The notes under the pieces are model-generated. The model saw only the letters and a program-made list of their open reading frames with translations, had not been told where the DNA came from and did no database searches. From Geosiphon pyriformis uo1 (lineage: Eukaryota; Fungi; Glomeromycota), in assembly GCA_016748015.1 (NCBI GenBank), contig JAAOMT010000479.1:337824-401823 (forward strand): DNA of 64,000 nucleotides, in the 5' to 3' direction. The stretch's first letter is position 1, and each line of letters starts with the position of its first letter. Below, piece after piece: positions 41,830-64,000 of the stretch. Both the position numbers and the translations under genes were made by a program.

Positions 41830-43716
41830 ATGATACTAAAGATTCTTTTTCCATTTCCATCTAAAAAAATTATTAAACCTATTAAGAGAAAGCTATTTTG
41901 GGAAATATTTAACTATTCACGAAGGACTCATTATACTTTACCTCGAAATGTGACCGCGAAACTTATCATATCGCGTCAAACTCTCACCCAACCTTTTCTA
42001 TTCCTGTCGCCCTCAGGCTCAAGAATAAGCCCTAGATTTATTCAAACTCGCCAATTTTGCTCAGACTCCGCTGCAAGCATTGGTTCCCCTTCTGAAACCG
42101 TGAAATCACAAGATCTCTTAAAAGTAGAAACCCAGTGGTTCAATTTATCATTCTATACCTTTAGACCAATTGATTCATCATCTTTAATCAAATTGCGTGA
42201 TACTATGATGGCACGGTTTTTAGAGTTTGGGATTTTGGGGAGAATATATATAGCTACCGAAGGCATCAATGCTCAAATGTCCTGTCCTCGTGAGAATATT
42301 GATTCTTTGAGAAATTATTGTGATGGGGAACTGGTTCAATTTTTTGAAAAGAGGAGGAATGATGACAATGAAGGTGGGCTTGTAGTCGAGGATGAAAAAA
42401 TAATTGGTGATTTCAATTATTCAACTTCATCTGGGCAGCGTGCCGCTTTTCGGAAGTTGACCGTCAAAATACGAAATCAAGTATATAAAAATACGAATTT
42501 TTATGAAATCTGTCTTGTTTTGTTGTGACAATAATACAAAAAATATATATAAGGCATGTTTGATTTCTAATTCTCTTCTTTTTTTAAAATTTTTAGATAG
42601 TTGTCGATGGTTTTCCTCCCAACTCCTATGACCTGAGTAAACAGCCTATTCACTTATCTCCGGATGAATGGCATCTTAAATTATCGATGAAACCACCCGG
42701 TGCCAAAACAATTCTGATTGACATGCGAAATCATTATGAATCGTGAGTAATTGTGACCTTTCTTATGGATGGAATGGGGGAAGTATTGCTATTTTGTTTA
42801 CAATGTCAAATAATACTTTGTTTTTTGGCTTCCCCCTTTCCATCAGTAATTGGGATCAATGAAATGTGGGAGAGAGGTGAATACGTTATTTTGATGCAAT
42901 TCATATTTTCCCATGATAATTTGATTATTTTTTATAATCAAAATTTGCATAATTTGCATTTAGAGAAATTGGATATTTTGAAAATGCGATACGTCCAGAT
43001 GTGGATACATATCGTGATAGCATTAAGGCAATGAATGAAATATGTGTCAGAAAACAAGACCAAGAGATCTTTATGTATTGTACAGGTATAGAGTATGAGA
43101 GATTTCTTGATTATTTAAGAGTTACTCACATTTTTTGATATTTGATAAAGGGGGTATTCGCTGCTCAAAAGCTGGTGCTATCCTGCGTTCCACCGGATTC
43201 GAATCTGTGAACGTTCTCAAAGGCGGGATTACAGCTTATGGGCGGTATATTACTTCGAATCCCCACATTACTTCACTCTATAAAGGTCGGAATTTTACAT
43301 TTGATCGACGTTTGGGGGAACCAATAACTAATGACATAGTCTCGGAATGTCATACATGTGGTCAGCCTTGCGACAAGCACACTAATTGCCGTCATAAAAC
43401 CTGCAATTTGTTATTTATTCAATGCAAGGATTGTAAAACGAAATTAAAACGCACCTGTGGCAATCCTACATGTCTTGAGATGGCTGAGGCTTGGGACAAA
43501 CATCATGGGGATGTTATTGCAACTATAGACCCTTCAGTACTGGAATCGATCAAATTCATCGACCCAGTTTTTGATGATGTTAAACCTGGACTTACCTGTT
43601 GGTATGATCATGGGCGTCGTACACGCCCTCGCTTGGTGATCGAAAGATTGGGCGGAAAGGGGCACAGTTTGAAAAGTGAGATAATCGAAGAGCTTCTCAC
43701 TCGACAAGCTCTGTGA
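41830..43716 (+). CDS. trhO: UPF0176/TrhO-family rhodanese-domain protein (TSTD2-like), probably mitochondrial; exons 41830-42480, 42597-42742, 42964-43085, 43151-43716
   Basis: GRIYIATEGINAQ, IDMRNHYESEIG, YCTGGIRC, LKGGI, FTFDRRL and a C-terminal Cys cluster; canonical GT-AG introns join in frame. Confidence 0.92.
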
Positions 43717-44265: not shown

Positions 44266-46070
44266 TCAGTTTATTGAAAACTCCGCCATTTCTGATTTTT
44301 TATCATCGACTTTGGGATCCAGTTGAGAAATATCTGCAACTCTTTCTTTTAAAGAATCTGTCGCTGTTTCCTCTCCTTTTCCGGAAACAATCGGAAATTT
44401 TTCAATTTTCTCGGTCATTTCTGATTCTAGAGTGAAAGTTTCCCATTTGTGATGGCGCACGAAATTCATAGTTAAAGGCTTTTCGTCGGATAGCAGTACC
44501 ATTAATTGAACCCGCTGAGGATTTTCTATTGACAGTATGAAAAAGGGATTCCAGATCCGTTATTACCGAGTTTTCTCCTTGAATATTGGCTTCATCTCGA
44601 TCAGACCCACCTGAGGCATCCTGAATATCTTGTGCGGCTTTCAAGTCTTGTCCACTAGATCGCAGCCAGTAAGACCAACATTGACCTGCAGTTTTGGACC
44701 TAACATGTTCGGCTATCTTAGCCCAATCCATTTTATAAATGGAAACTGCTTTCTCAAATGCTTCGGCTTCATCAACAGTCCAATAGATATCTCCATAACG
44801 ATACCTAACAGATGCCAAAGTCCGCCCTGGCAATCGCTCAAGGATTTTTCCCCAGTCTTCCCCAAATTCCTTAACTGCTTGGAAAAGCGTTTCATTTTCT
44901 TCCTTTGTCCAAGGTTTTTTGGAAGCCACTGGGGTATCGTACCTAACATGGATCTTTTCGATGGGTTTCTTAACTGCATTGTTCACCTCGGACAATTTCT
45001 TGTCAAGAATATCCCCCAAACGAGTTTCCAAAGAGTCTTGATATTTGGGTTCTTTTTGGGTATTTGGTTGAGTTTCTTTTGATTTCCACGGAAGACCTTG
45101 AGATCTTGATTGTGGTAATTTTTGCTCCAATCCTTTATTATTCATTAAATACTCAAATTTTTTTTGACAAGCTAAAGTTGATCTTGAAGAATTAAAGGAT
45201 TGGCTCGAAATTAGCTCGAAATTCTCGCCGTATTCTTCGACGCCTTTCATAAGTTTTTGAATTTCTTCAGAACTCCATGGTGGAAAATGGGAGAACTTTC
45301 TTTCGTATGCAATCTCTACAGAAGTGGGTGATCTTTTTGATTTAAAATGCTTTTCCGATATTAACTTCCAATTTTTCCCCTCTTTTGCGACACTTTCCAC
45401 GAGTAAAGCTCTTTCCTCATGGGTCCAAAATGGCCCCCTATATCCCGTATGAGATCCTGTATTTTGATTTTGGTATTTTGGCACAAAATTATTGCCTCTG
45501 TCGGTTGATTCAGAATCGCTATTTTTACGAAATGTGGGCAGTGATTGCTCTCCGCCTTGTAGATTTGGCACGAGTGCTGCCTGTCGAGAGGAGGGTGAAG
45601 ATCTGTTTTTAAAGGGTTAATTACATTAATTTAAAATATGTCCATGTTCCAAACAATCGAATTAATATTGCCCTAATGACCTATGGCTTTACTCACTCTT
45701 GCAAGTTTCTGGAGTGGCTTACTAGTTCTGGAGTATTCTTTTTATCGAAATTGAAGCGGCCAGATTCAACTGACCTATTCATATTTTGTCTATAAATAGC
45801 AGGCGTTCGTAGAGTGGGACGCAAGTCACCGCTGTTTTCGTTCTTTGAAGGAGCAATAGGAGCGTCAAAGGGAGAAGGCTTGAATTCCCGATTACCGGAG
45901 GTAAAAGGATCACCAGTTGATGGTATGTTAGGGTGTTGAGAAACATGAGAAAAGGAAGTGCCAAATGGATCAGGTGGTGAATATGTCACTTTGGAGTTGG
46001 ACAATTTTCTCTTGCACAACCATCTTCCTGGGTCACCCCAAACTCTGCGAATCTTTGGAATTTGTAACAT
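44266..46070 (-). CDS. Myb/SANT four-repeat protein; exons 46070-45697, 45602-44500, 44426-44266 (or a stop at 44402 if the last intron is retained)
   Basis: Four W(T/S)xEE..W/F..I..R(S/T) repeats (FWTHEE, PWSSEE, PWTKEE, YWTVDE); in-frame GT-AG junctions. Confidence 0.85.
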
Positions 46071-48428: not shown

Positions 48429-48716
48429 AATAACTATGTAATTGATTGATTAGCCTTAGCGATAGGTGATCGATTTAATATATCCAATAGGGACAGTATG
48501 TATAAATGATCACTTGAGAAGTTTACGAAATACGTGAACATTATTTTCTTAATCATTTTGAGACCATAGCTCTCTGTTTTAAAACCAAACAATTGCGGTT
48601 TATAATGCACAGAATTGATGAAAAAGAGGGGGCTCAACTGTATCAGATATTGAATTAAATATTGATCTAGAACTCTAGTCTGAATTTTCATACGTGGATC
48701 CTCGGGATTTTGTGTT

Positions 48717-51567
48717 TCATTCGTCTTTTAATCTACGATCTGTACAATCGATTCTTAGTAAACCCGCAGCCCCTCCTGAAGCTAACCACACGCCAGCGCA
48801 CTCATTAGGACACCAAGCGACCTATAACAACATCAAAAGTATGTAAAATGTGAAAATTTTTACTCGCAATACAGGTATATAATTTACCCTTTGAAGAGCT
48901 TCTTCGGGAGCAAATGACGGGGTAGGCATATTTTCATAAGTGATAGTGGGAAAGAGTGTCTCCTGAAAATCGAGGAGATAAAAACACCTGAGCAACGCAA
49001 GAATGATGAGGTTAATATCAACATAGGCGTATAGATTACCTCCGCTTTAATATTTTCCCATAGGCGAAATTGCATCTTAGCTTTATTCCATGTGAGGCGA
49101 TAAACAATTACTTGAAGTGGTCTCTGATTTATGATTGAAATAAGATTATTAATTTCAATTTAATTCTTAAATAAACATGATTGCTTACCTGTCGCCTATC
49201 TCTTAGTCGACATATATTAGTAATTTTCACGGTGCCATCAGTTGAACACGTTGCAATAAAAGGATGGTAAAAAGAACACGAAGTCCCCTACAAGAAATAG
49301 TCAATATAAAAGTAAAAGAAAATGTGATATAATTTAAAACTTGCTAAGTATTATACCCAGACATAGCCTCGATGAAGCACTATTCCAGTCGTTTTTTTGG
49401 GATCATCCATGCGAAGATAGCGCACAGAATTTTCGGAATCCGTAAAGGCTACACCTCCATAATTGCTTGCCCAGCAAAAAGAGACCAAAAAAGCTAAAAA
49501 GCATAAAACTCAATAGGCTGGCTTGTTTGAGCTTTCTATGCACAAGATTCTTCGATTAGAAAGATAAAATTCTTACAGCGAATCCTTTGGAATACGTGTT
49601 TTATCCACGGATCTCGATAGTCAAATATTTGTAATCTACCATCATGACTGCATGTCATTATGTGAGTAGGATCTTTAATCGAGTTCCAAGAAAGATCACG
49701 AACGCAAGAATTATGTGCAGCAACATAGCTCGCTGGATATAAAGCTTCAAAAAGAATTGGTCAATGTTTGGTTAATGAACAGAGCTGAATAAAATGGAAG
49801 GCATTTTTTTGCTTACCATCCTGACTCATTATGCCACCATTAATTTCCCATTCTGCTATAATACTTTCCAAATTCCAGATTGCTACATTTCCTGGAAAAG
49901 AATAAAAATCAGAAAATATGATATTATCTCTAGACAAAGAGGATCCATTACCGTTCGTGCAACCACTAGAAAACTTCGTATGGCCTCCCCAACTGAGAGT
50001 CCAACATAGAGTATCAGATATGGAAAATGTGAACAATGGCTTTTTAAATTTTACTAAATTTGATCAATGAATTAGGCATAAATTAAGTAAAAATGACATA
50101 TTTTACAAAAGCAAATTTACTGAAAAGGGGTTCTTGTATTGTGTTTTTCATCTTAAAATGTTGTCGAATGCTTTCTGGGTGTGGAACGGAAAAAAATCGG
50201 ATTGTTCCATCTCCGAAAGAACCGGCAAGAAGCCCCAGTCTTGAAAAAAAATTTCCATTTTCAATCAAGTCGATTTGCTATAAATCGGACACTAATTAAT
50301 CCGAATATTAAATTTAGTTTCTGCAGCAATAAGGTTTAGCTCACGTCATATGCCCCATATGGGCACCATTTCATATCGAAAGCACACCCAAATTCATGAC
50401 AGATTACAAGATCCAACTTTGGTGGCGCAACATCGTTTTCATATTGACGACAATCTATCCGCCAAATTTGAATGGCATTTTCCAATTCGGTTGTTTGGCA
50501 TTCCCCTATAGGATGATGCTCTTGGGTAGTACCCTTGAAGCCTGCGACAGCTAAGTACTGCTGATCTTAAAAAATATTATGGGGGCTTATTTAGCTAATA
50601 ATTGAAAAATATTATCAACCATTAATAAGATAGAGGTACCTGGGGATTTGATGGAAGGACACCATTGAATACACCAAATCGATCCGCCAGAATTTAAAAT
50701 ATATCCAGTTCTTGATGGGGATCGATTGTCTTGAGGTAAATTATAGCATCGATGGTTCGAGTAACTCAAAAGAAGTATAAAGCTTGAATTTCAGTGGAAT
50801 CAAGAAATATTTGGCTTACGGATTGGAAAGGATTGATATTGCGGTAATATTACAGGCTCTTCATCTTCTGGCCCTATGGTAACAATATAAGGTTCTTTTT
50901 GGTAGGGTAAATACAAACTTCCAGCCCTGTGTACAAGTAAAGTAATAAATCGATTCAGATGGCAAGATCTTTTGACTTCTAAATGACGCAAAAAGATTTT
51001 TCACACCCACTCTATAGGAAGAAGCTGGATACCATCCAGTTCAACTTTCAAATTGGGATACACTTTTTGAGGAAGCTCGTTGAGATTAATTCCCACTGGA
51101 CGCAAAAGATCTGTTTCAGGTCCAATAACTATTTCTTTCCATGTTTCCCCGAATACTTCTCCGACATCTCCACGTGTATATTCAAACTTATTATGAATCT
51201 TCTGCGTATGAGAGAGTCTGGTCTTTTTTTCGATGTCTACTTTCTCTACATCAGAAAGTGCCCCATCAGCCTCTTGACCATTATCAAGAAATTGTTCATC
51301 ATCAGAGATTTTCGAGGTCTTAGTGATACCGATTCCAGCTGCTTTTTTAAAATTCTGGGTTTTGTTTTTCTTGACAGGGAAATTATTTTTTCTTTTTACT
51401 TTAGGAGGCGTCTTTAATGATGCTTTTTCCTTCAAAAGTGTGCGTTTTTTCCTATTTGATACCCGCGTTGCTTTCATTTCGGACGAAGTAACTGTAAGGG
51501 CTTTATTCGAGCTTTTTTCAATAACACAATCACTCTCATCAATTTCCTCTGTGTTTTTTTTGACATA
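48717..51567 (-). CDS. TFC6: TFIIIC tauB WD40 subunit (Tfc6/Sfc6/GTF3C2), multi-exon, with its 5' end cut by Tc1
   Basis: GGSIWCIQWCP, YLAVAG, DMKWCPYG, RLGLLAGSFGDGTIRFF, C-terminal WLASGGAAGLLRI; exons read are open and have GT-AG borders. Confidence 0.82.
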
Positions 51568-52737
51568 CAGTCTGGGACAAAAAAAATTGGACAAAAAAAT
51601 GCATCTTACAAGATTTGATCTAGTTTAACCAATTTTGGTTAGATTGTGGTGAGGTTAGTTGGAAATGAATGCGAAGGTAAGTGGCTATTGGCTTATATAT
51701 TTTTTTTGTGCATTTTATTAATTTTTTTTTTAATTCTCGCGCGAAAATGGCAACATCCAAGCAAGAAATGCAACGACAAACAGTATTGTATTTTTGGAAC
51801 CAAGGAATACGAATTGCAGCGGAAATACAGAAGCGAACAAATATACCACGTTCTACTATTTACAATATTCTTAAAAAACTCGAAAAAACCGGGGTGGTGG
51901 AGCATGCAGGTGGAAATGGTCGGCCAAGAAAGATTAAAGGGGTTGCTTCGCGAGTATTACAATCGTACATCAAACGGGATTCCTCAATTTCAACGAGAAC
52001 TTTGACAACAAAGTTGTCAAAAATAAATGTAGAGGTATCCTATAGAACAATTGGGAGGCATTTAGCATTTCTTGGTTACAAAAAAGACCTTCCTCGGGCC
52101 ATCCCAATGCTTACTGATAAACATAAAGAGAGGCATTTGGAATGGGCTTACCAACACTTGAATGACAATTGGGACCGAACTGTTTTTACAGATGAAACGG
52201 CCTTTTGTTTATTCCGGAACACACTAGAGCATTGGTATAGAGGTTTACGGCCCACCCGTGCCATTCCAAAAGATCGAACAAAAGTCTTTGCTTGGGGTGG
52301 TTTCTATAAAGGAGGAAAGACAAGTTTATTTTGTTTTACTGGAATAATGGATAGTCATTTTTACATAGAAATTCTTCGTATTCACCTGCCTGAAATTAGA
52401 CGACTTGAACCCTATTGAAAACTTGTGGGCTATTGTCAAGAATAAGGTAGAAAAGCGAATGCCCGAAAATTGTGACTAGTTAATGCAGTTTATGGAAGAA
52501 GAGTGGCGGATGATTTCCGGATCTACCCTTATCGGGTTAGTAGAATCAATGAAACAGCATTGTGAGATGGTGATTGCGAATAAGGGGGAAAGAATATTAT
52601 ATTAATATTCTATTAATTTTTTTTAATAAAATAATGTGCTTTTTATCTTTCTAATGATATATTTTTTGTAAAATTTGGTCCATTAATTAAAGCACAATAA
52701 TTAGTTTTTTGTGTCCAATTTTTTTTGTCTTACACTG
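51568..52737 (+). mobile_element. Tc1/mariner (IS630-Tc1) DNA transposon, internally deleted
   Basis: TA TSDs at 51566-67 and 52738-39; ~26-bp imperfect TIRs CAGT(C/G)T(GG/AA)GACAAAAAAAATTGGACA. Confidence 0.95.
51747..52605 (+). pseudogene. Tc1-like transposase, non-functional
   Basis: HTH N-terminus, VFTDETAF, WGGF; a deletion at ~52402 removes the second catalytic Asp and frameshifts into DLNPIENLW; an additional stop follows. Confidence 0.9.
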
Positions 52738-52739
52738 TA

Positions 52740-54023
52740 TAATTGTTAGATTTTAGAGTTTCTATTAGGGACTTTGTTTCCGAGTTCATCACTTTTAAAT
52801 TTTTAACTTTTTTGTTGTCTGTTCCCTTCATGTCCTCAATAGATAACTTTTTTCTCTGTGTATATTTTCTCTGTGTATATTTTCTCTTTGTAGGCTTTGT
52901 TAATCATGTTGTTTCTGAAGTAGTACTTGTTTGAATATTAAGTTGCTTTTCTTCTACTTCTTTTAAGTCCTTAACAGATTCCTTTATTGAAATCTCTTTA
53001 CCTTGAGTATATCTTTTCTTGATTGATGGTTCTGTTGAATACATTGTTTCCAAAGTAGCCTCTCTTACAGTATTAAATAGTTTTACTTCTAAGCTCTCAG
53101 TATATTCTCCCACTGATAACAATTTTTTGTAAGTATATCTTCTTTTCTTTAGAGGTTCTGTTGGTTGTGTTGCTATTAAGCTAGTGCCTACTGAAGTATT
53201 AGATAGTTTGCTTTCAACCCCTCCTATTGATGATTTTTTTCTTAAAGTATATTTTCTTTTCTTTAAAGGTTTTGTTTATTGGATCATTTCCGAATTAGTA
53301 TCTATTGAATCATTAACTAATTCATCCTTGGTTCTTTTCAAGGTTCTGGTAGACTTCTCTATTAATAAAATTTTCTTCTGAGTATATTTTCTTTTCTTTG
53401 AAGGTTTTGTTAATTGGGTTGTTTCCACAATAATAGCTACCTTATCATCTTTTTCTTCCAAGTTACTAACAGACATATTAATTAATAACTCTATTTTTGG
53501 AGTATATTTTCTCTTTTGTAGACATCCTGTTGACTGTGTTTTCTCTTTCCAGATAATACTTGTTAGAGTGCTTGATAAATCAATTTTAATTGCATGTATA
53601 TTTCTATCTATTGTGTTTTTTGATAAATTTTTATGAGATGTAGTTTTACTATTAGCTTCAAGCTTATTTAATGGTCTTTTATTTGAAGTGCCAAGTAATG
53701 AATAGTTATCTTGTTTTGTACTAGCTTCTTAAATACTGTGCTTGGTTACTTTGAATATATTAGCTTTGATAACATAATTACTTCTAAGCTTTCTTTTTTC
53801 TTTTGTTTGAACTTCTCCAGCATCAATTCTGGTTCAGTTGTTTCTAGTACAATACCAATAAATTTAATAATAGAATTTCATTTGTTACCTTTGACCCCAG
53901 TATTAAGTAATTTTTTTGCTTATGCCTTTTCTTTAGATTTGGTTTTCCCTTTTGGGTTATTCAAAAAAAATTTAAAGAAATATTGTTTTTAAAGAGAGAT
54001 TTAGGACTTGCTTTATTTATCAT
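52740..54023 (-). pseudogene. Orphaned, decayed 5' coding region of the Tfc6-like gene with about six KRKYT-type repeats
   Basis: Long near-open frame with TGA/TAA interruptions; the SET..TKP.KKRKYT..K repeat continues across the TA site into the intact exon. Confidence 0.65.
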
Positions 54024-54563
54024 GATTTCACTTGCTTTTCAATATAAGACTTTGATTCTTAAAAAATTAAAAGCATATATAGTAAGAAATATTGTTTGTT
54101 TAATTTCAAAGAAATAATAGATCCACTTACTAGTAATTATGCTATAGCGAAAAGATAGATCTTATAATCTCAGTTTTCTTAAATAATTAATTTTATAATA
54201 TATTAATATTTATTTAAATTTTGCCAATAAAATTAATTATTGTATTATTTAATATTTAGAAAACTACTTTTTATAAATTTATAATTATTTAAAAAAACTT
54301 ATGCTATAAAATAAATATATAACATAAATATTGAATAATTAAATTAAATTAAATTAAATTACAAAAACATAAGTTATATTAATTTAATGATGAATTTGAT
54401 TTTTGGAAAAAATTTTTTAATTAATAATAATAGTTACAATTTTGTGTATATGCCAAGTAATTAATTATTATATGCTAATTAATTTTTGTTGTTGAATTCT
54501 AAATATGTTTATTTTAAATATTAAATGACAAAATTTTATAATAATAAAATTTTAATAAAAAAA

Positions 54564-54659
54564 CATAAGCCACATCTATTTTAGAGTAGTTTTTACTGTA
54601 TTGTAATAAGTGGTGATTGGACTACACTCGTTATTGCAAAATAAATAAATAAATAAAAA
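54564..54659 (+). mobile_element. 5'-truncated LINE 3' end (~95 bp)
   Basis: CATAAGCCA..GACTACACTCGTTA plus (TAAA)n matches the 3' UTR at ~31306-31390. Confidence 0.65.
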
Positions 54660-55067
54660 GATGTTAATTTTTTATTTTAATTGTTTGATTAATTTAATTT
54701 TTATTAATTTTTTTATTTTAATTATTAATTATTCAGATAATTGGTTATATATAGCAATATAATTTATGTTTATTGTATACTATTTTTAAGTTATATATTC
54801 ATAGATAATAAATGAATCATATTTATATATACAAAAAAAATTAATTATTATTTTAACATATTTTTTAAAAAAAAAACTTTATTTATTATATTTTTTAATT
54901 TTTTATAAATTATTAAAAATAATAACATAATATTTTTAATAATATTTTTGATTATTAACCAAAATAAAAATCTGAATGTGTTTTTTTAAGTTAAAAAAAC
55001 AATTTTTTTTATGTTAATAATAATATATTATTATTAATTATTGAAATTTGCTACATAAAAATATGTA

Positions 55068-56065
55068 TTTTTTTTTTATTTCATTTAACAAGTGAAGTCT
55101 AAACACAACCTAATGCTATACATCAAAAAAACAATTTAAACTAAGTGTGAATCATGCACTTTTTACATGTGACCAGCCACTCAGACCAATCAAAACAACA
55201 TTACACAACTATATAAACCAAAACTGGATCACTTAAACCAGAAAAAAACAAACTGGATTTGCGAAAGCCAAAACGAATACCAAAACCATCAGCAATACCA
55301 AGCAATTTGACTATACCAGCAGAAAACTTCAAAACCAAACCAGAGACTGAGATAAGAGTTGAGCCATCAAGTAAAATCAATCTATTCTTTTCTATGTAAG
55401 CACGATGTTTAGCACGAACTAACTAGATATCAGCCCTAAAAGTAAGACCAAGAGAATACACAAATTTGACAACCTTCACACTGGCAATCTTGGGATCATG
55501 GAAGATAGAAACAGTCTTACAAAACCAGCCATCAAAAACAAAACCTTTATAAAAAGCTGTGGACACAGAAGAATCAGAGACATAGGATAACAACAGCTGT
55601 AATATGTCCGAAAAGGAATAAGAAAGACCAAAAACTGCCTTCCAGGAGCTCATATAAGATTCCAATAAACACCACTGAGCAGATTCATCAACCTTATAAG
55701 AAAACACATGATCCAACACCTCCACTTCACCACAATATAAGCACAACACATTAGGATACAGCCTACTATAAAGATGCTTCTAAACAGCAACTGGCAGCTG
55801 GTGGTGCAAAGCTTTCATAAAATAAGTGTGTGTATTAGCCAAGAGTTTGCTGGTAAAACTGGCAGCCATATGCAAGTTAAGATGTCATACCAATGATAAA
55901 CAAAGCCAATCAACTTCTAAGAGCAAACAACCAGCCAAAAACTTAGAACCAGACTCAATCTTCTAGCACACATGGCAAACTAAACAATAAATATTACAAA
56001 CAAAATGTCTGGAGTTGCCAGAAACAATTTCACCATTAGCAATCAAGAAATGTTCATTCAGGTGG
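55068..56065 (-). mobile_element. LINE2 3' part (end of RNase H, Zn finger, 3' UTR, poly(A))
   Basis: CLYCGEVEVLDHVF; 3' UTR homologous to 31260-31380; poly(T) at 55068-55077. Confidence 0.9.
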
Positions 56066-59743: not shown

Positions 59744-62700
59744 TGTTATGGGTAAACTTGGTGGGTATGAGAAATAGTAACATTTAGTGCTCTCAATTAT
59801 TGATGATGCGTCTTCTGCATAATTCTGTTGGCTTAGTCTTGATTATCAGTCTCTGAAGATCTATTCCTGGATGTGAATTTTACCCATTGAGTTCTTTGGT
59901 TATAAGGCACAGAGTTTGTCTTTCATTGATTGCAATGTTTTTTGTAAATGTAAGCTTTCTTCTCCAAGCTAATGAGCGCAGTTGTTAGGGTTTGGCGTTG
60001 TCTTTTTACCCTTCTGGTAAGCTAACAAGATAATGTTAATATCCAAAACTTAGGAGGAGCTTCCCTCCTTTACCAGGCTATTACAAAGTCTATTCCCAGA
60101 CAGTCAATTTTACTATGTTGTCACTCCACAAAAAAATAAGACAGAAAAAGAAAGAAAAAGAAAAAGAAAGAAAAAGAAAAAGAAAAGAAAAGAAAAGAGA
60201 GAAAAGAGAAATTAGTATCGTCAATTGCCATAATCAAGAGTGATTGGTCCAAATCATTAATAGGTTCGAAGTGGTTATGCTAAGAGCATCTGTTCTAGAA
60301 CGGAGGTACGAGACAAGGGTTAATTCATGTAAATTCTACGAAGTTCGAGAATGTAAATTTATGATTCTGATTTCTTTTAATAATTGGTTTATTTCAGGAG
60401 ATGAAATAGGGAAGATAATAAAGGATGAAGGGATATAGATATTTTAATTTCTGGTTTAGAGGTTCATATCTATTTTTTCTTCTCTGTCTTTTCTCACTTC
60501 TACAACTACTTGCTTTTATACATTCTTTTGGTTTTACAGGATTGCTTTCAATTGTCTCGCTATTGCTAGCTATTGCTTTGTTGTTTCTGTTATTGCTTCA
60601 TTTTTCTACATTATCACTAGTTATCTTATGTTATAACATGTTATCTGATGTTATTATATGTTATTCTGTGTTATCCTGCATTATAACACATTATCTTATG
60701 TTATTGCGCACTATTCTGTGTTATTCTGTGTTATAACACATTATCCAACGTTATAACGTATTATCCAATGTTATTGCGTGTTATTCTGTGTTATGTTATG
60801 TTTTGGTCATGTTTTTTCATAACTTTGGATCGGTTTTTCTACTCAGGTAACATTATCCCTCTCTTTTTAAAATTGAGCTCCTGTGAAACCATATGTATCT
60901 ATTATTGTGACTTCGTTCGTGTAATGTTTAATTGTTGTCTCGAGTATTGCTTTTTGTAGGTCTTTGAACTGTTGATTGGTTATTCATCCTATGCTATTAA
61001 CTATTATGGTTTTTATAGATCCATTTAGTAGTACATTTGGGCAATGTTGAAAGGTGGCATATAGTCGGTATACTGCTTTGTAATGTAGGGTCAGATTGTT
61101 TTTCCCTACAAATTTTTCTACTTGTTGTATTGCTTCTTTGTTGAACGTTTTCTGGCTGAGGTCTTCGTATAATGTTTTCAAGTCAAGCTGTTCTCCAATT
61201 TTGTAGAACCAATAAGCTGGAGGAAGACTTTTTTTCCATTCTTGAGCATTGTCAGGTGTCCACTCCCCTGTTTCGGGGAGTTCGGTCCCATGAGCTAAAG
61301 CTTCTTTTATTTCTTTGAGCTCAGGGACCAAGTATCTTCTTTTGTAACCTTTTTCTCGTTCTTTGTCTCCTTCTTTTCCACCCCCCACCCGAAGACAATT
61401 TTTCCTCCCACATTGCCTTTCGGGTGGTGGGTAAGAAAGGAAACATTTAGTTCTAATTGAACTCTCGTCTTCCCCTCTCCTGTTCTTATCTTTGTACTAT
61501 ATCTTTTTTTTATCAATTATTATTTTTATTTGAGATGTCGATTTTTGAATTGTTTTAAATAATTGTTTAGATAATTTTAAAATTTGATCTGAAAAGTCCA
61601 TGTTGAAATTTCTATTGTTTCTTGCTGTTTTTCAGATGCTATATATATTTGAATTCCCCAATTTAATTTGCTGTCTGTTGTCTACATTTCAATGACGATG
61701 ATTGGTTCCAGATCTTGTAGTATATCTTCTGGTCTGATTAATGAAATTTGTGTTCCTAGTTGAGATACTGATAATGATAATTCCTGTTTTACATGATAAA
61801 TTTTTAACCAATTTCCATGCACTACTTTCTTTAAAATCCTGTTTTTCAATCGTAATTTGTAAGCTCCATTTCCTAATGCTTCATGTATGTGAAATGAACT
61901 GTCCCACTTTGGGTTGAACTTTCTACTCCACTGTTTCTCAGCTTTTGTACGATGTAATAGTACTTGGTCTCCAATCTTGAATTCCATTGGTTGTTCTGAT
62001 AGATGTTTATCATGTCTTTCTTTTTGTCATTTTTGAGCATAACTAATATTGTTAGCTGTTGTTCTTTGATTGTTTTCTAACGTTTCCATTAGCTGATATG
62101 TTTTTTGGTGTAAGGTAGTCTCAAAATTCTTTTCATTAATTGTTTCTGTTGGGTATGATGGTATCACTCATTTAATTAATAACATAGCTTTTCTTCCATA
62201 GACTAATTCGAACAGTGTGAACTGAGTCATATTTTGTTTCAATGTTTGGTATACAAAGAGTACAGAAGGTATGAATAAGTCCTATTCTTGTCTGTTTTCA
62301 TGACTTATTTTTGCTAGTGCTTTGCACAGTGTTCTGTTAAATTGTTTTACCAGTCTATTCATTTGTGGATGGTATGGTGACGATAAGGGTCTTTTTATTC
62401 CAAACTATTGGCTTAGTTCAGTCAGCGTATTATTAACAAAGTGTGTTCTCTGATCAGATAATAATTCTTTCGGACATCTATGTCGGCAAATTAGGTCTTG
62501 ATGCACAAATTTGGCAACTGTTTTGGCATCGGCCATTTGGATTGCTCTGGCTTCTGGCTATTTTGTAAGATAGTCTACGGCTACAGCGATATAGTGATTT
62601 TCTTGAGATGTAATTGAAAGAGATCCAACCAAATCAATCCCAATTCTATCAAATGGATTTCCAACTGGAATGGGTCGAAGTGGTTCTGTTGATTTTGCTC

Positions 62701-64000
62701 CTCCTTTTCGCTGGCATGCGTCACAATTGAGCATGTATTCGAAAATGTCTTTGTGTATCGTTGGCCAATAGTATAAGTTTAGTGTTCTTTTGAGGGTAGT
62801 GTTTTTGTTAAAGTGTTCTGCAATCGGATCTGAGTGCACGCTATATAGTATAGTTTCTCTTTTACTGTCCGTGATTAGTTGTTGTGAGTTGGGATGGTTT
62901 CAGCATTCTCATTGATATAGTTGATTGTCTTGAATAAAATAATTTCAGGCTTGTTTTTGTATGATACTCTGTTCCTGTTGAGATAATATCTTCTTGAAAC
63001 GTAGTATCAATAGGTATTGATATAGTCATTGATAAGTGAGTGTGTCCATAAGTCTGGGATTAGGTTTGTGGCATCCTCGACAAACTGTCAGTATTGGTGT
63101 TCTTGAATCCTTCCTTGTAATAGACTTTGAGTGGGAATTGTTGCAGATAAGTACTCCATCTCACATATTTTTCTTCTAGTTGTGGATTGTTAAGTAACCA
63201 AATAAGTCTTTTGTGGTCAGTATATAGGTTAAATGGTTGACTGAGGTAATGTTTCCAAGTCTGTATGGCTCAATAAATGGCAAGACATTCCAGATCTGTT
63301 GTGCTGTAATTTTTTTTTGCTGGGCTAGTGCTGCAACTAGTGTAGGCAACTGGGTGTTCTCTATTGTCCAGTCCTATTTGTGATAAGACTGCTTCTAAAG
63401 CATTTTTCGAGGCGTCTGTAGTGACAATGAACTATTTAGTAAAATCTGGGTAAATCAGGATTGGGGATGTGATCAATCACTGTTTGAGATAGTCGAATGC
63501 TTTCTGTTGATCTTCCTTTCACAAGTATGATACATATTTGGACAACAATTAATAGAGTGGTTTTGTGATGTTCGAGAAACCTTTGACAAATTGATGATAA
63601 TATCCTGCTAATCCTAGAAATCCTTGTAATTCTCTAAGGTTGATTGGGGCTGGAAAATTCTTAACTTTTTGTACTTTATCTGAATCGGGTTTAACTCTGT
63701 CCTTGCTGATTACATGTCCTAAGAATTTTAACTCGGTTTTTCCAAAGAAGCACTTCCCGGGATTGAGTTTCAATCTGGCACTACAAAGGCATTCGAAAAC
63801 TTGTTGCAGGTGGAGCAAATGGTCTTCAAATGTTTCGGAGAACACATTTGTGTCATTTAGGTAGACTACTACTGATTTCCAAAAGATTCCTTTGTATACG
63901 ACATCCATCAGGTGTTGAAACGTGGCAGGAGTATTACAAAGTCCAAAAGGCATTACGTTAAACTTGAAGTTTCCGTTTCGAGTGGTAAACGCTGTTTTTC
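59744..64000 (-). mobile_element. Gypsy D (same family as C), 3' portion: RT, RNase H (stop 63060), separate integrase (63049-61682), ORF3 (61601-60867), PPT, 3' LTR (59744-60852)
   Basis: MPFGLCN, VVYLNDT, VTDASK, HSDPIAEHF, GIDLVG; PPT at 60853-60868; runs off the window end. Confidence 0.93.
60143..60210 (+). repeat. (GAAAA/GAAA)n tract inside LTR D
   Basis: Direct reading; it is the expanded polypyrimidine tract of the LTR sense strand. Confidence 0.9.

Follow-up and report, generated by a model that had tools for sequence, protein, structure and literature searches.

We analysed a 64,000-nt stretch of the genome of the glomeromycotan fungus Geosiphon pyriformis uo1 (contig JAAOMT010000479.1, positions 337,824 to 401,823), hereafter the window, in which a Tc1/mariner transposon stands just upstream of the gene for Tfc6, a WD40 subunit of TFIIIC. 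Read 5′ to 3′ on the minus strand, the locus comprises an AT-rich spacer, a lysine-rich near-open reading frame (ORF), the Tc1, an open exon and the WD40 exons. An earlier note, made from the sequence alone, had placed a dead Tc1 between a decayed 5′ piece and an intact 3′ part of Tfc6, and an arrangement of this kind holds: on one side of the dead Tc1 is a decayed, untranscribed coding relic, on the other an intact, expressed, single-copy Tfc6. It had gone on to propose that the insertion amputated the N-terminus of Tfc6 and that the transposon now drives what is left. Here, we argue that the explanation as a whole is probably a different one: Tfc6 is intact and tolerates the Tc1 inserted in its 5′ flank, at a border of hypermutation, and the relic beyond the Tc1 is dispensable. 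The features of the locus are as follows, with observed/expected abbreviated as o/e and private changes being those of the window copy alone.

48717..51477, minus strand: Tfc6/TFIIIC110 (GTF3C2-family) gene, 13 exons, 628 codons; ATG at 51477, stop at 48719–48717
~51177, minus strand: conserved RGD..W motif of the Tfc6 gene, from orthologue comparison
51478..51567, minus strand: 90-nt gap from the Tc1 end to the Tfc6 ATG; gene frame open, without an ATG; probable 5′ untranslated region (UTR) or transcription start site (TSS) zone
51566..51567: TA target-site duplication flanking the Tc1, gene-proximal
51568..52737, plus strand: Tc1/mariner copy, 1170 bp, antisense to Tfc6; transposase 5′ end toward the gene
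51681..52418, plus strand: shortened transposase ORF, 245 aa, HTH_Tnp_Tc3_2; frame lost at a 122-bp deletion
52477..52737: distal 261 bp of the Tc1, with 7 of its 12 private changes, all C>T/G>A
52738..52739: TA target-site duplication flanking the Tc1, distal
52742..53728, minus strand: coding relic, 329 codons, two stops, K(K)RKYT repeats; GC 28%, CpG o/e 0.08
52850..52892: 15-nt tandem duplication in the relic, 2.9 copies, 96% matches; encodes KYTQRKYTQR
53729..54023, minus strand: 5′ end of the relic, more decayed; every frame has stops
54024..55100: AT-rich spacer, GC 12–15%; the relic on one side, degraded retroelement DNA further upstream

The gene is open through all 628 codons of its 13 exons when the frame is checked exon by exon. 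Its 12 introns, 60–90 nt each and GT..AG on the minus strand, are skipped by contigs of run X1 that span 48573–51433 at no less than 99% identity. The kind of data in run X1 is recorded as uncertain; because these 12 GT..AG intervals are skipped, we take its contigs to be spliced RNA, and the WD40 exons are indeed as clean as they had first looked. A search of 1.8 billion cluster representatives with exon 1 returned four weak matches, one of them a Dentiscutata protein of 536 aa (P0002), and a word search with P0002 led to orthologues in Gigaspora, Rhizophagus clarus, Funneliformis, Acaulospora, Diversispora, Entrophospora, Paraglomus and Basidiobolus. All orthologues found match the exons of the window (tblastn), the glomeromycotan ones at 40–60% identity, and the gene is roughly equidistant from every other glomeromycotan order. 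The window protein itself was searched one exon at a time; a profile made from eleven orthologues matched human GTF3C2 (8cli_C, 2.8e-38) and yeast tau91/Tfc6 (2j04_B, 8ffz_E and 9gc3_B, ~1e-16) in the PDB above any other WD40 protein, in agreement with the family assignment of the earlier note. Copy number, a check it had proposed, comes out as one: a P0002 search of the 128.3-Mb genome (792 contigs) finds this locus only, and no second Tfc6/GTF3C2 copy. Judged by its sequence, the predicted gene is a complete, single-copy, expressed Tfc6/TFIIIC110 orthologue.

No stop interrupts the downstream frame between 51624 and 51004, and it includes ATG 51477, the first usable start, as had been surmised, and the only in-frame ATG before the conserved region. 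Because no other in-frame ATG precedes that region, real mRNAs must begin upstream of 51477. The most 5′ RNA contig (depth 113) reaches 51433 and leaves 44 nt to the ATG uncovered; a splice acceptor at this contig end was considered and rejected, as no AG is present there. Despite the depth of this neighbour, no RNA contig lies on 51434–51721 and no joint touches the Tc1 end. Being drawn from the contigs of one run only, this is weak evidence, and it goes against the use of a Tc1-derived 5′ exon or acceptor. A long unique leader through 51434–51567 would be expected to give a contig, so that its absence weakly favours a TSS within 51434–51567. Most likely, Tfc6 transcription starts between 51434 and ~51570, at the extreme end of the Tc1 or immediately outside it. 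Transcripts begun in the last 150 nt of the Tc1 would contain upstream ATGs at 51604 and 51565. The Tc1 5′ end could conceivably act as a bidirectional promoter, head-to-head with the transposase gene.

Comparison with orthologues bears directly on whether anything was amputated. Glomeromycotan Tfc6 proteins have 439–589 aa and, counted from annotated starts, 10–58 residues before the RGD motif; the window protein has 628 aa, the longest found, and 100 residues before the motif. A protein that exceeds its relatives on both counts is hardly the N-terminally truncated core factor that had been envisaged. Upstream of the Tfc6 ATG, the 348 bp to a divergent UBC gene in R. clarus, 1.06 kb in Gigaspora rosea and 1.47 kb in Paraglomus are all stop-dense and hold no KRKYT-like ORF, and KRKYT repeats are absent from every orthologue found. 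The earlier note had itself listed a lack of the upstream repeat region in orthologues among its refuting conditions; they are without the repeats, so the claim of an amputated N-terminus fails. A conserved start region was also sought: the 100 N-terminal residues, compared by BLASTP with the N-termini of the R. clarus protein and P0001, gave no match. The conserved N-terminal sequence of Tfc6 is, by these comparisons, apparently not amputated, nor is the gene predicted to be crippled. What was lost would be at most a lineage-specific extension; since it is missing from all orthologues found, we regard it as dispensable. On that view, the basic region at the N-terminus of Tfc6 may expand and disappear without harm.

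The transposon was correctly described as TA-flanked (element 51568–52737, TA at 51566–67 and 52738–39). It begins CAGTC and ends CACTG, its 35-nt arms are 89% complementary, and both its flanks are single-copy in the genome. The transposase ORF (51681–52418, plus strand) matches HTH_Tnp_Tc3_2, and the sister copy L010 has the HTH domain together with DDE_3. A 122-bp deletion, private to the window copy, cuts the DDE domain, and because of it the element is dead. Its identity to the family consensus is 99.0%, and its nearest sisters are 97.5–98% identical to it. The window Tc1 is, on this reckoning, both young and dead.

Nothing in the terminal inverted repeats (TIRs) of the window copy appears to have been made for the use of Tfc6. 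Seven copies were aligned, six of which have TA on both ends. Most of them carry CAGTCTGGGAC at their transposase-5′ end and also share the poly-T run and both CTAAC boxes, which are conserved or little degraded; six of the seven have CAGTC. CAGTC, which had been read as a change from CAGTG in this copy, is thus common to the family, and the poly-T..CCCAG with its CTAAC boxes, held to be an evolved splice acceptor, occurs in most copies compared. Within its TIRs the window copy has one private change, CC>TT at 52730–31 in the distal arm. No copy-specific change that creates a signal, as exaptation would call for, is seen in the seven-copy alignment. Run X1 also contains a contig from a sister copy (six differences) that corresponds to window 51722–52305 and is antisense to the transposase, with a GT..AG intron of 75 nt (equivalents 52113..52039) and a terminal A25 where the window has the A-run 51722–31. 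To judge by this contig, splice and poly(A) signals apparently exist in antisense orientation within the Tc1, and antisense read-through may be polyadenylated there.

On the far side of the Tc1, the relic frame (codons 54109−3k) has two stops in 329 codons (TAA 53278–76 and TGA 52906–04), as compared with 34 and 32 in the other two same-strand frames. Shuffles of the relic have 28 stops on average, and 0 of 20,000 have two or fewer; from this scarcity of stops we conclude that the relic is a real former coding sequence. There is no frameshift across the 329 codons, which hold six or seven K(K)RKYT units at a spacing of ~40 aa. Decay of the upstream frame is nonetheless real, as had been noted: apart from the two stops, every frame is broken 5′ of 53729, and the candidate ATG at 54023 reaches a stop after 20 codons. 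The relic is single in the genome and no RNA contig of run X1 maps to it; searches of Pfam, of the proteins of its own genome and of the ESM Atlas give only the relic itself. Downstream of the Tc1, a seven-unit profile hidden Markov model of the KRKYT repeats scores nothing on 187 residues (1000 shuffles were run too), and blastn between the two flanks gives nothing better than E 0.25. The repeats are upstream only, which does not bear out the supposed position of the Tc1 inside a coding repeat region. In amino-acid make-up the relic resembles the clean N-terminal part of exon 1 (K 17% and 19%, T 13% and 9%, S 10% and 9%, E 8% and 9%, respectively). Together with strand and adjacency, this composition suggests that the relic is a former low-complexity, basic N-terminal extension of Tfc6. 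Compared among themselves, the repeat units of the relic have a transition/transversion ratio of 1.46, which is uninformative on transition excess. The 15-nt duplication at 52850–52892 is apparently younger than most C>T changes of the relic.

What befell the relic is best understood from the base composition of the locus and from the other copies of the Tc1. Exact counts agree with those made by eye: 2 CpGs in the 1.28 kb upstream (52740–54023, o/e 0.08) and 16 in the 0.57 kb downstream (51001–51567, o/e 0.81), with CpGs retained in the Tc1 (32, o/e 0.90). Genome-wide, the Tc1 copies fall into two groups:

4 clean copies (window, L008–L010): 99.0–99.8% identical to consensus; 3–12 C>T/G>A and 0–2 other changes; CpG kept 84–100%; GC 0.36–0.38; flank o/e 0.5–1.1 (three sisters)
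10 hypermutated copies (L011–L020): 87–92.5% identical to consensus; 95–152 C>T/G>A and 1–7 other changes; CpG kept 5–12%; GC 0.26–0.30; flank o/e 0–0.35

The C>T/G>A sites are mostly independent between copies, and the hit rate per cytosine falls from CpG (0.56) through CpC (0.29) to CpT (0.21) and CpA (0.19), the last two about equal. All ten hypermutated copies have CpG-void flanks, and all three clean sisters have CpG-normal ones; the window copy is the only border copy, with a flank o/e of 0.76 on the left and 0.10 on the right. This bimodality looks like a compartment-bound process, similar to repeat-induced point mutation (RIP), in a glomeromycotan. Exon 1, which is clean, has GC 0.38 and o/e 0.81, and the relic GC 0.28 and o/e 0.08; the mutated Tc1 copies (CpG o/e 0.08–0.18) differ from clean DNA (GC 0.36–0.38, o/e 0.8–0.9) in the same way. 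The GC content of the window as a whole is ~30%. The locus lies in a CpG-normal island (~37–52.7 kb) between CpG-void stretches, of which the one upstream of the relic has degraded retroelement DNA. The decay of the relic is, by its composition, compartment-wide C>T/G>A hypermutation, a fast process; the decay after amputation that had been put forward, if taken as slow and neutral, is not supported.

The window Tc1 itself bears traces of this process. All 12 of its private changes are C>T/G>A, from which it follows that hypermutation acted here after insertion. They affect 7 of 81 G/C sites in the distal 261 bp and 5 of 347 elsewhere (Fisher p 0.002, with a cut-point picked after the data were seen), and the distal cluster looks like leakage from the hypermutated flank. 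Copy L013 carries 138 C>T/G>A changes and 1 other, or about one other change per 1.3 kb; because of this ratio, hypermutation must saturate fast on the background mutation clock. We had considered a clock argument, in which the 92% CpG loss would make the relic far older than the 99%-identical Tc1, and dropped it since L013 shows such fast saturation. A tRNA or other RNA gene that might act as a chromatin barrier was searched for, and none was found.

Taken together, these data are consistent with the following scenario. A young, internally deleted Tc1 sits 91 nt upstream of ATG 51477, head-to-head with Tfc6, and so occupies a promoter or 5′-UTR zone and not conserved coding sequence. The insertion is on the border between the CpG-normal gene island and the CpG-void compartment, within which every sort of DNA has been subject to fast C>T/G>A hypermutation; the KRKYT near-ORF would be the hypermutated relic of a lineage-specific coding sequence. 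Several points weigh against this scenario. When the Tc1 and one TA are excised, the relic and gene frames are offset by 1 nt, so a link between the two calls for a further indel, for which the A8 run at 51554–61 is one candidate site. The idea of a former extension was judged against more remote relatives than Ambispora or Archaeospora. ATG 51477 lies beyond the RNA contig coverage, and as the start codon of the mRNA it is a predicted one. The RNA evidence consists of assembled contigs of one run, in which the TSS is not visible and gaps prove nothing.

The idea that the Tc1 hit a continuous coding exon and removed a functional N-terminal domain, after which the 5′ piece decayed and the transposon came to supply a promoter, 5′ exon or acceptor, would explain why the border between CpG-void and CpG-normal DNA falls exactly at the distal Tc1 end. 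It also gains from the intact frame of the relic, which would mean a recent death on the background clock; from L013, by which the time since insertion could suffice for hypermutation; from the C>T changes that entered the Tc1 after insertion; and from the transposase 5′ end facing the gene, which makes a bidirectional promoter conceivable. Yet the extension is found in no orthologue and the remaining ORF is the longest of its family, the frames of the empty site are 1 nt off, and the acceptor-like TIR and CTAAC boxes are common to most copies compared. Such a history would also have required an immediate internal promoter and ATG for an essential gene; an antisense poly(A) site and two upstream ATGs lie in or beside the Tc1 end, and 51434–51721 is without a contig next to one of depth 113. 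We regard it as unlikely, though it deserves to be kept in mind. A variant, in which the insertion itself moved the border of a hypermutating (probably methylated) compartment, uncoupling the old promoter and laying a lineage-specific N-terminal exon of an essential Pol III factor open to genome defence, with a transposon-end promoter, shared head-to-head with the transposase, and the transcribed element now serving as the hypermutation barrier, is a speculative idea that we would also call unlikely.

It is less probable that the relic was never part of Tfc6, being instead what is left of another gene upstream or a piece joined to Tfc6 by ectopic recombination between two Tc1 copies; we rate this as decidedly unlikely. 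The out-of-register frames, the lack of repeats downstream and the abrupt change of composition at the Tc1 would all fit, and with TA at both ends in six of seven copies, the TA does not distinguish a recombinant from a simple insertion. Moreover, once the empty site is reconstructed, the relic frame continues for 31 codons to a TGA at 51476–74 that overlaps ATG 51477 (ATGA), although this is probably chance. However, the relic is on the same strand and abuts the gene with no room for a promoter between them, its composition resembles that of exon 1, recombination needs two insertions and an exchange, and clean and heavily mutated parts do not alternate within the Tc1. Very improbable, in our view, is that the Tc1 sits in an intron, with an upstream exon (ATG ~52836, donor AAA|GTGATG at 52793/92, branch CTAAC at 52749–45) spliced to the AG at 51547–48. 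The intron without its Tc1 would have 74 nt, within the 60–90 nt of the 12 confirmed introns, and would be in phase, having a CTAAC 27 nt before the AG. However, only the second AG (GAG) is in phase, the first (CAG 51549–50) being out, and GAG is found in 0 of 12 confirmed acceptors; the intron would now measure ~1.24 kb, as against <100 nt for the gene's introns, and no contig lies on 52628–52826 or 51434–51567.

The chances that the relic was hypermutated before or after the Tc1 arrived are about even. The exact position of the border at the Tc1 and the absence of frameshifts in the relic favour insertion first. The 1-nt frame offset favours an older relic, as does the consideration that an essential gene would otherwise have had to find a functional internal promoter and ATG at once; a DNA transposon could also plausibly favour an open promoter at a chromatin border. 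Two scans of metagenomes for an empty-site allele or another strain found none.

The neighbourhood is otherwise as follows. A 389-aa ORF with four Myb repeats (44402–45571, minus strand) lies directly downstream of Tfc6 in the same CpG-normal island, and a rhodanese/UPF0176 gene lies at 41830–43716 (plus strand). Degraded Ty3/Gypsy remains (RVT_1, Tf2-1-type SH3) occupy 60000–64000 (minus strand), with a CpG o/e of ~0.5.

Like Tfc6 (tau91) of Saccharomyces cerevisiae and human TFIIIC110 (GTF3C2), the window gene encodes, in single copy, a homologous, predicted WD40 beta-propeller subunit of TFIIIC with a basic, low-complexity region before the propeller. The yeast and human proteins have ~170–280 extra N-terminal residues, in contrast to the 10–58 before RGD in glomeromycotans and the 100 here, where the dead 330-codon repeat relic lies upstream in addition. 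Tc1/mariner insertions in 5′ regions or exons can be tolerated by the host gene, as in C. elegans Tc1 alleles that are removed by cryptic splicing. The present case is similar in that a TA-flanked Tc1 stands in the 5′ part of a working gene. It differs in that no chimeric or Tc1-skipping transcript is seen in the contigs and in that the Tfc6 coding sequence has its own downstream ATG, needing nothing from the Tc1.

RIP, and its leakage into adjoining single-copy genes, is familiar from Neurospora and from the AT-isochore effector genes of Leptosphaeria. The process at work here resembles it in being almost purely C>T/G>A (95–152 such changes and 1–7 others in each of ten Tc1 copies), in the collapse of GC and CpG, in the stops introduced into adjacent unique coding DNA, and in the sharp bounds of its AT-rich compartments. 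It differs from Neurospora RIP in its preference (CpG > CpC > CpT ~ CpA, not CpA) and in that surroundings, not repeat status, decide: the unique relic and flanks are hit, and clean multi-copy Tc1s in CpG-normal DNA are spared. RIP signatures were reported as not detected in Gigaspora or Mucoromycotina (PMC8647823), and for that reason the hypermutation seen here merits a study of its own.

The locus itself is ordinary: a tolerated transposon in the 5′ flank of a housekeeping gene, with a dead coding relic beside it. What makes it valuable is that it cleanly and naturally marks a compartment border in an early-diverging glomeromycotan, where unique coding sequence saturated with C>T changes lies next to a dated and almost untouched transposon. 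As such, it should be useful for gauging how fast and how sharply bounded hypermutation is in this lineage, and whether active promoters halt it.

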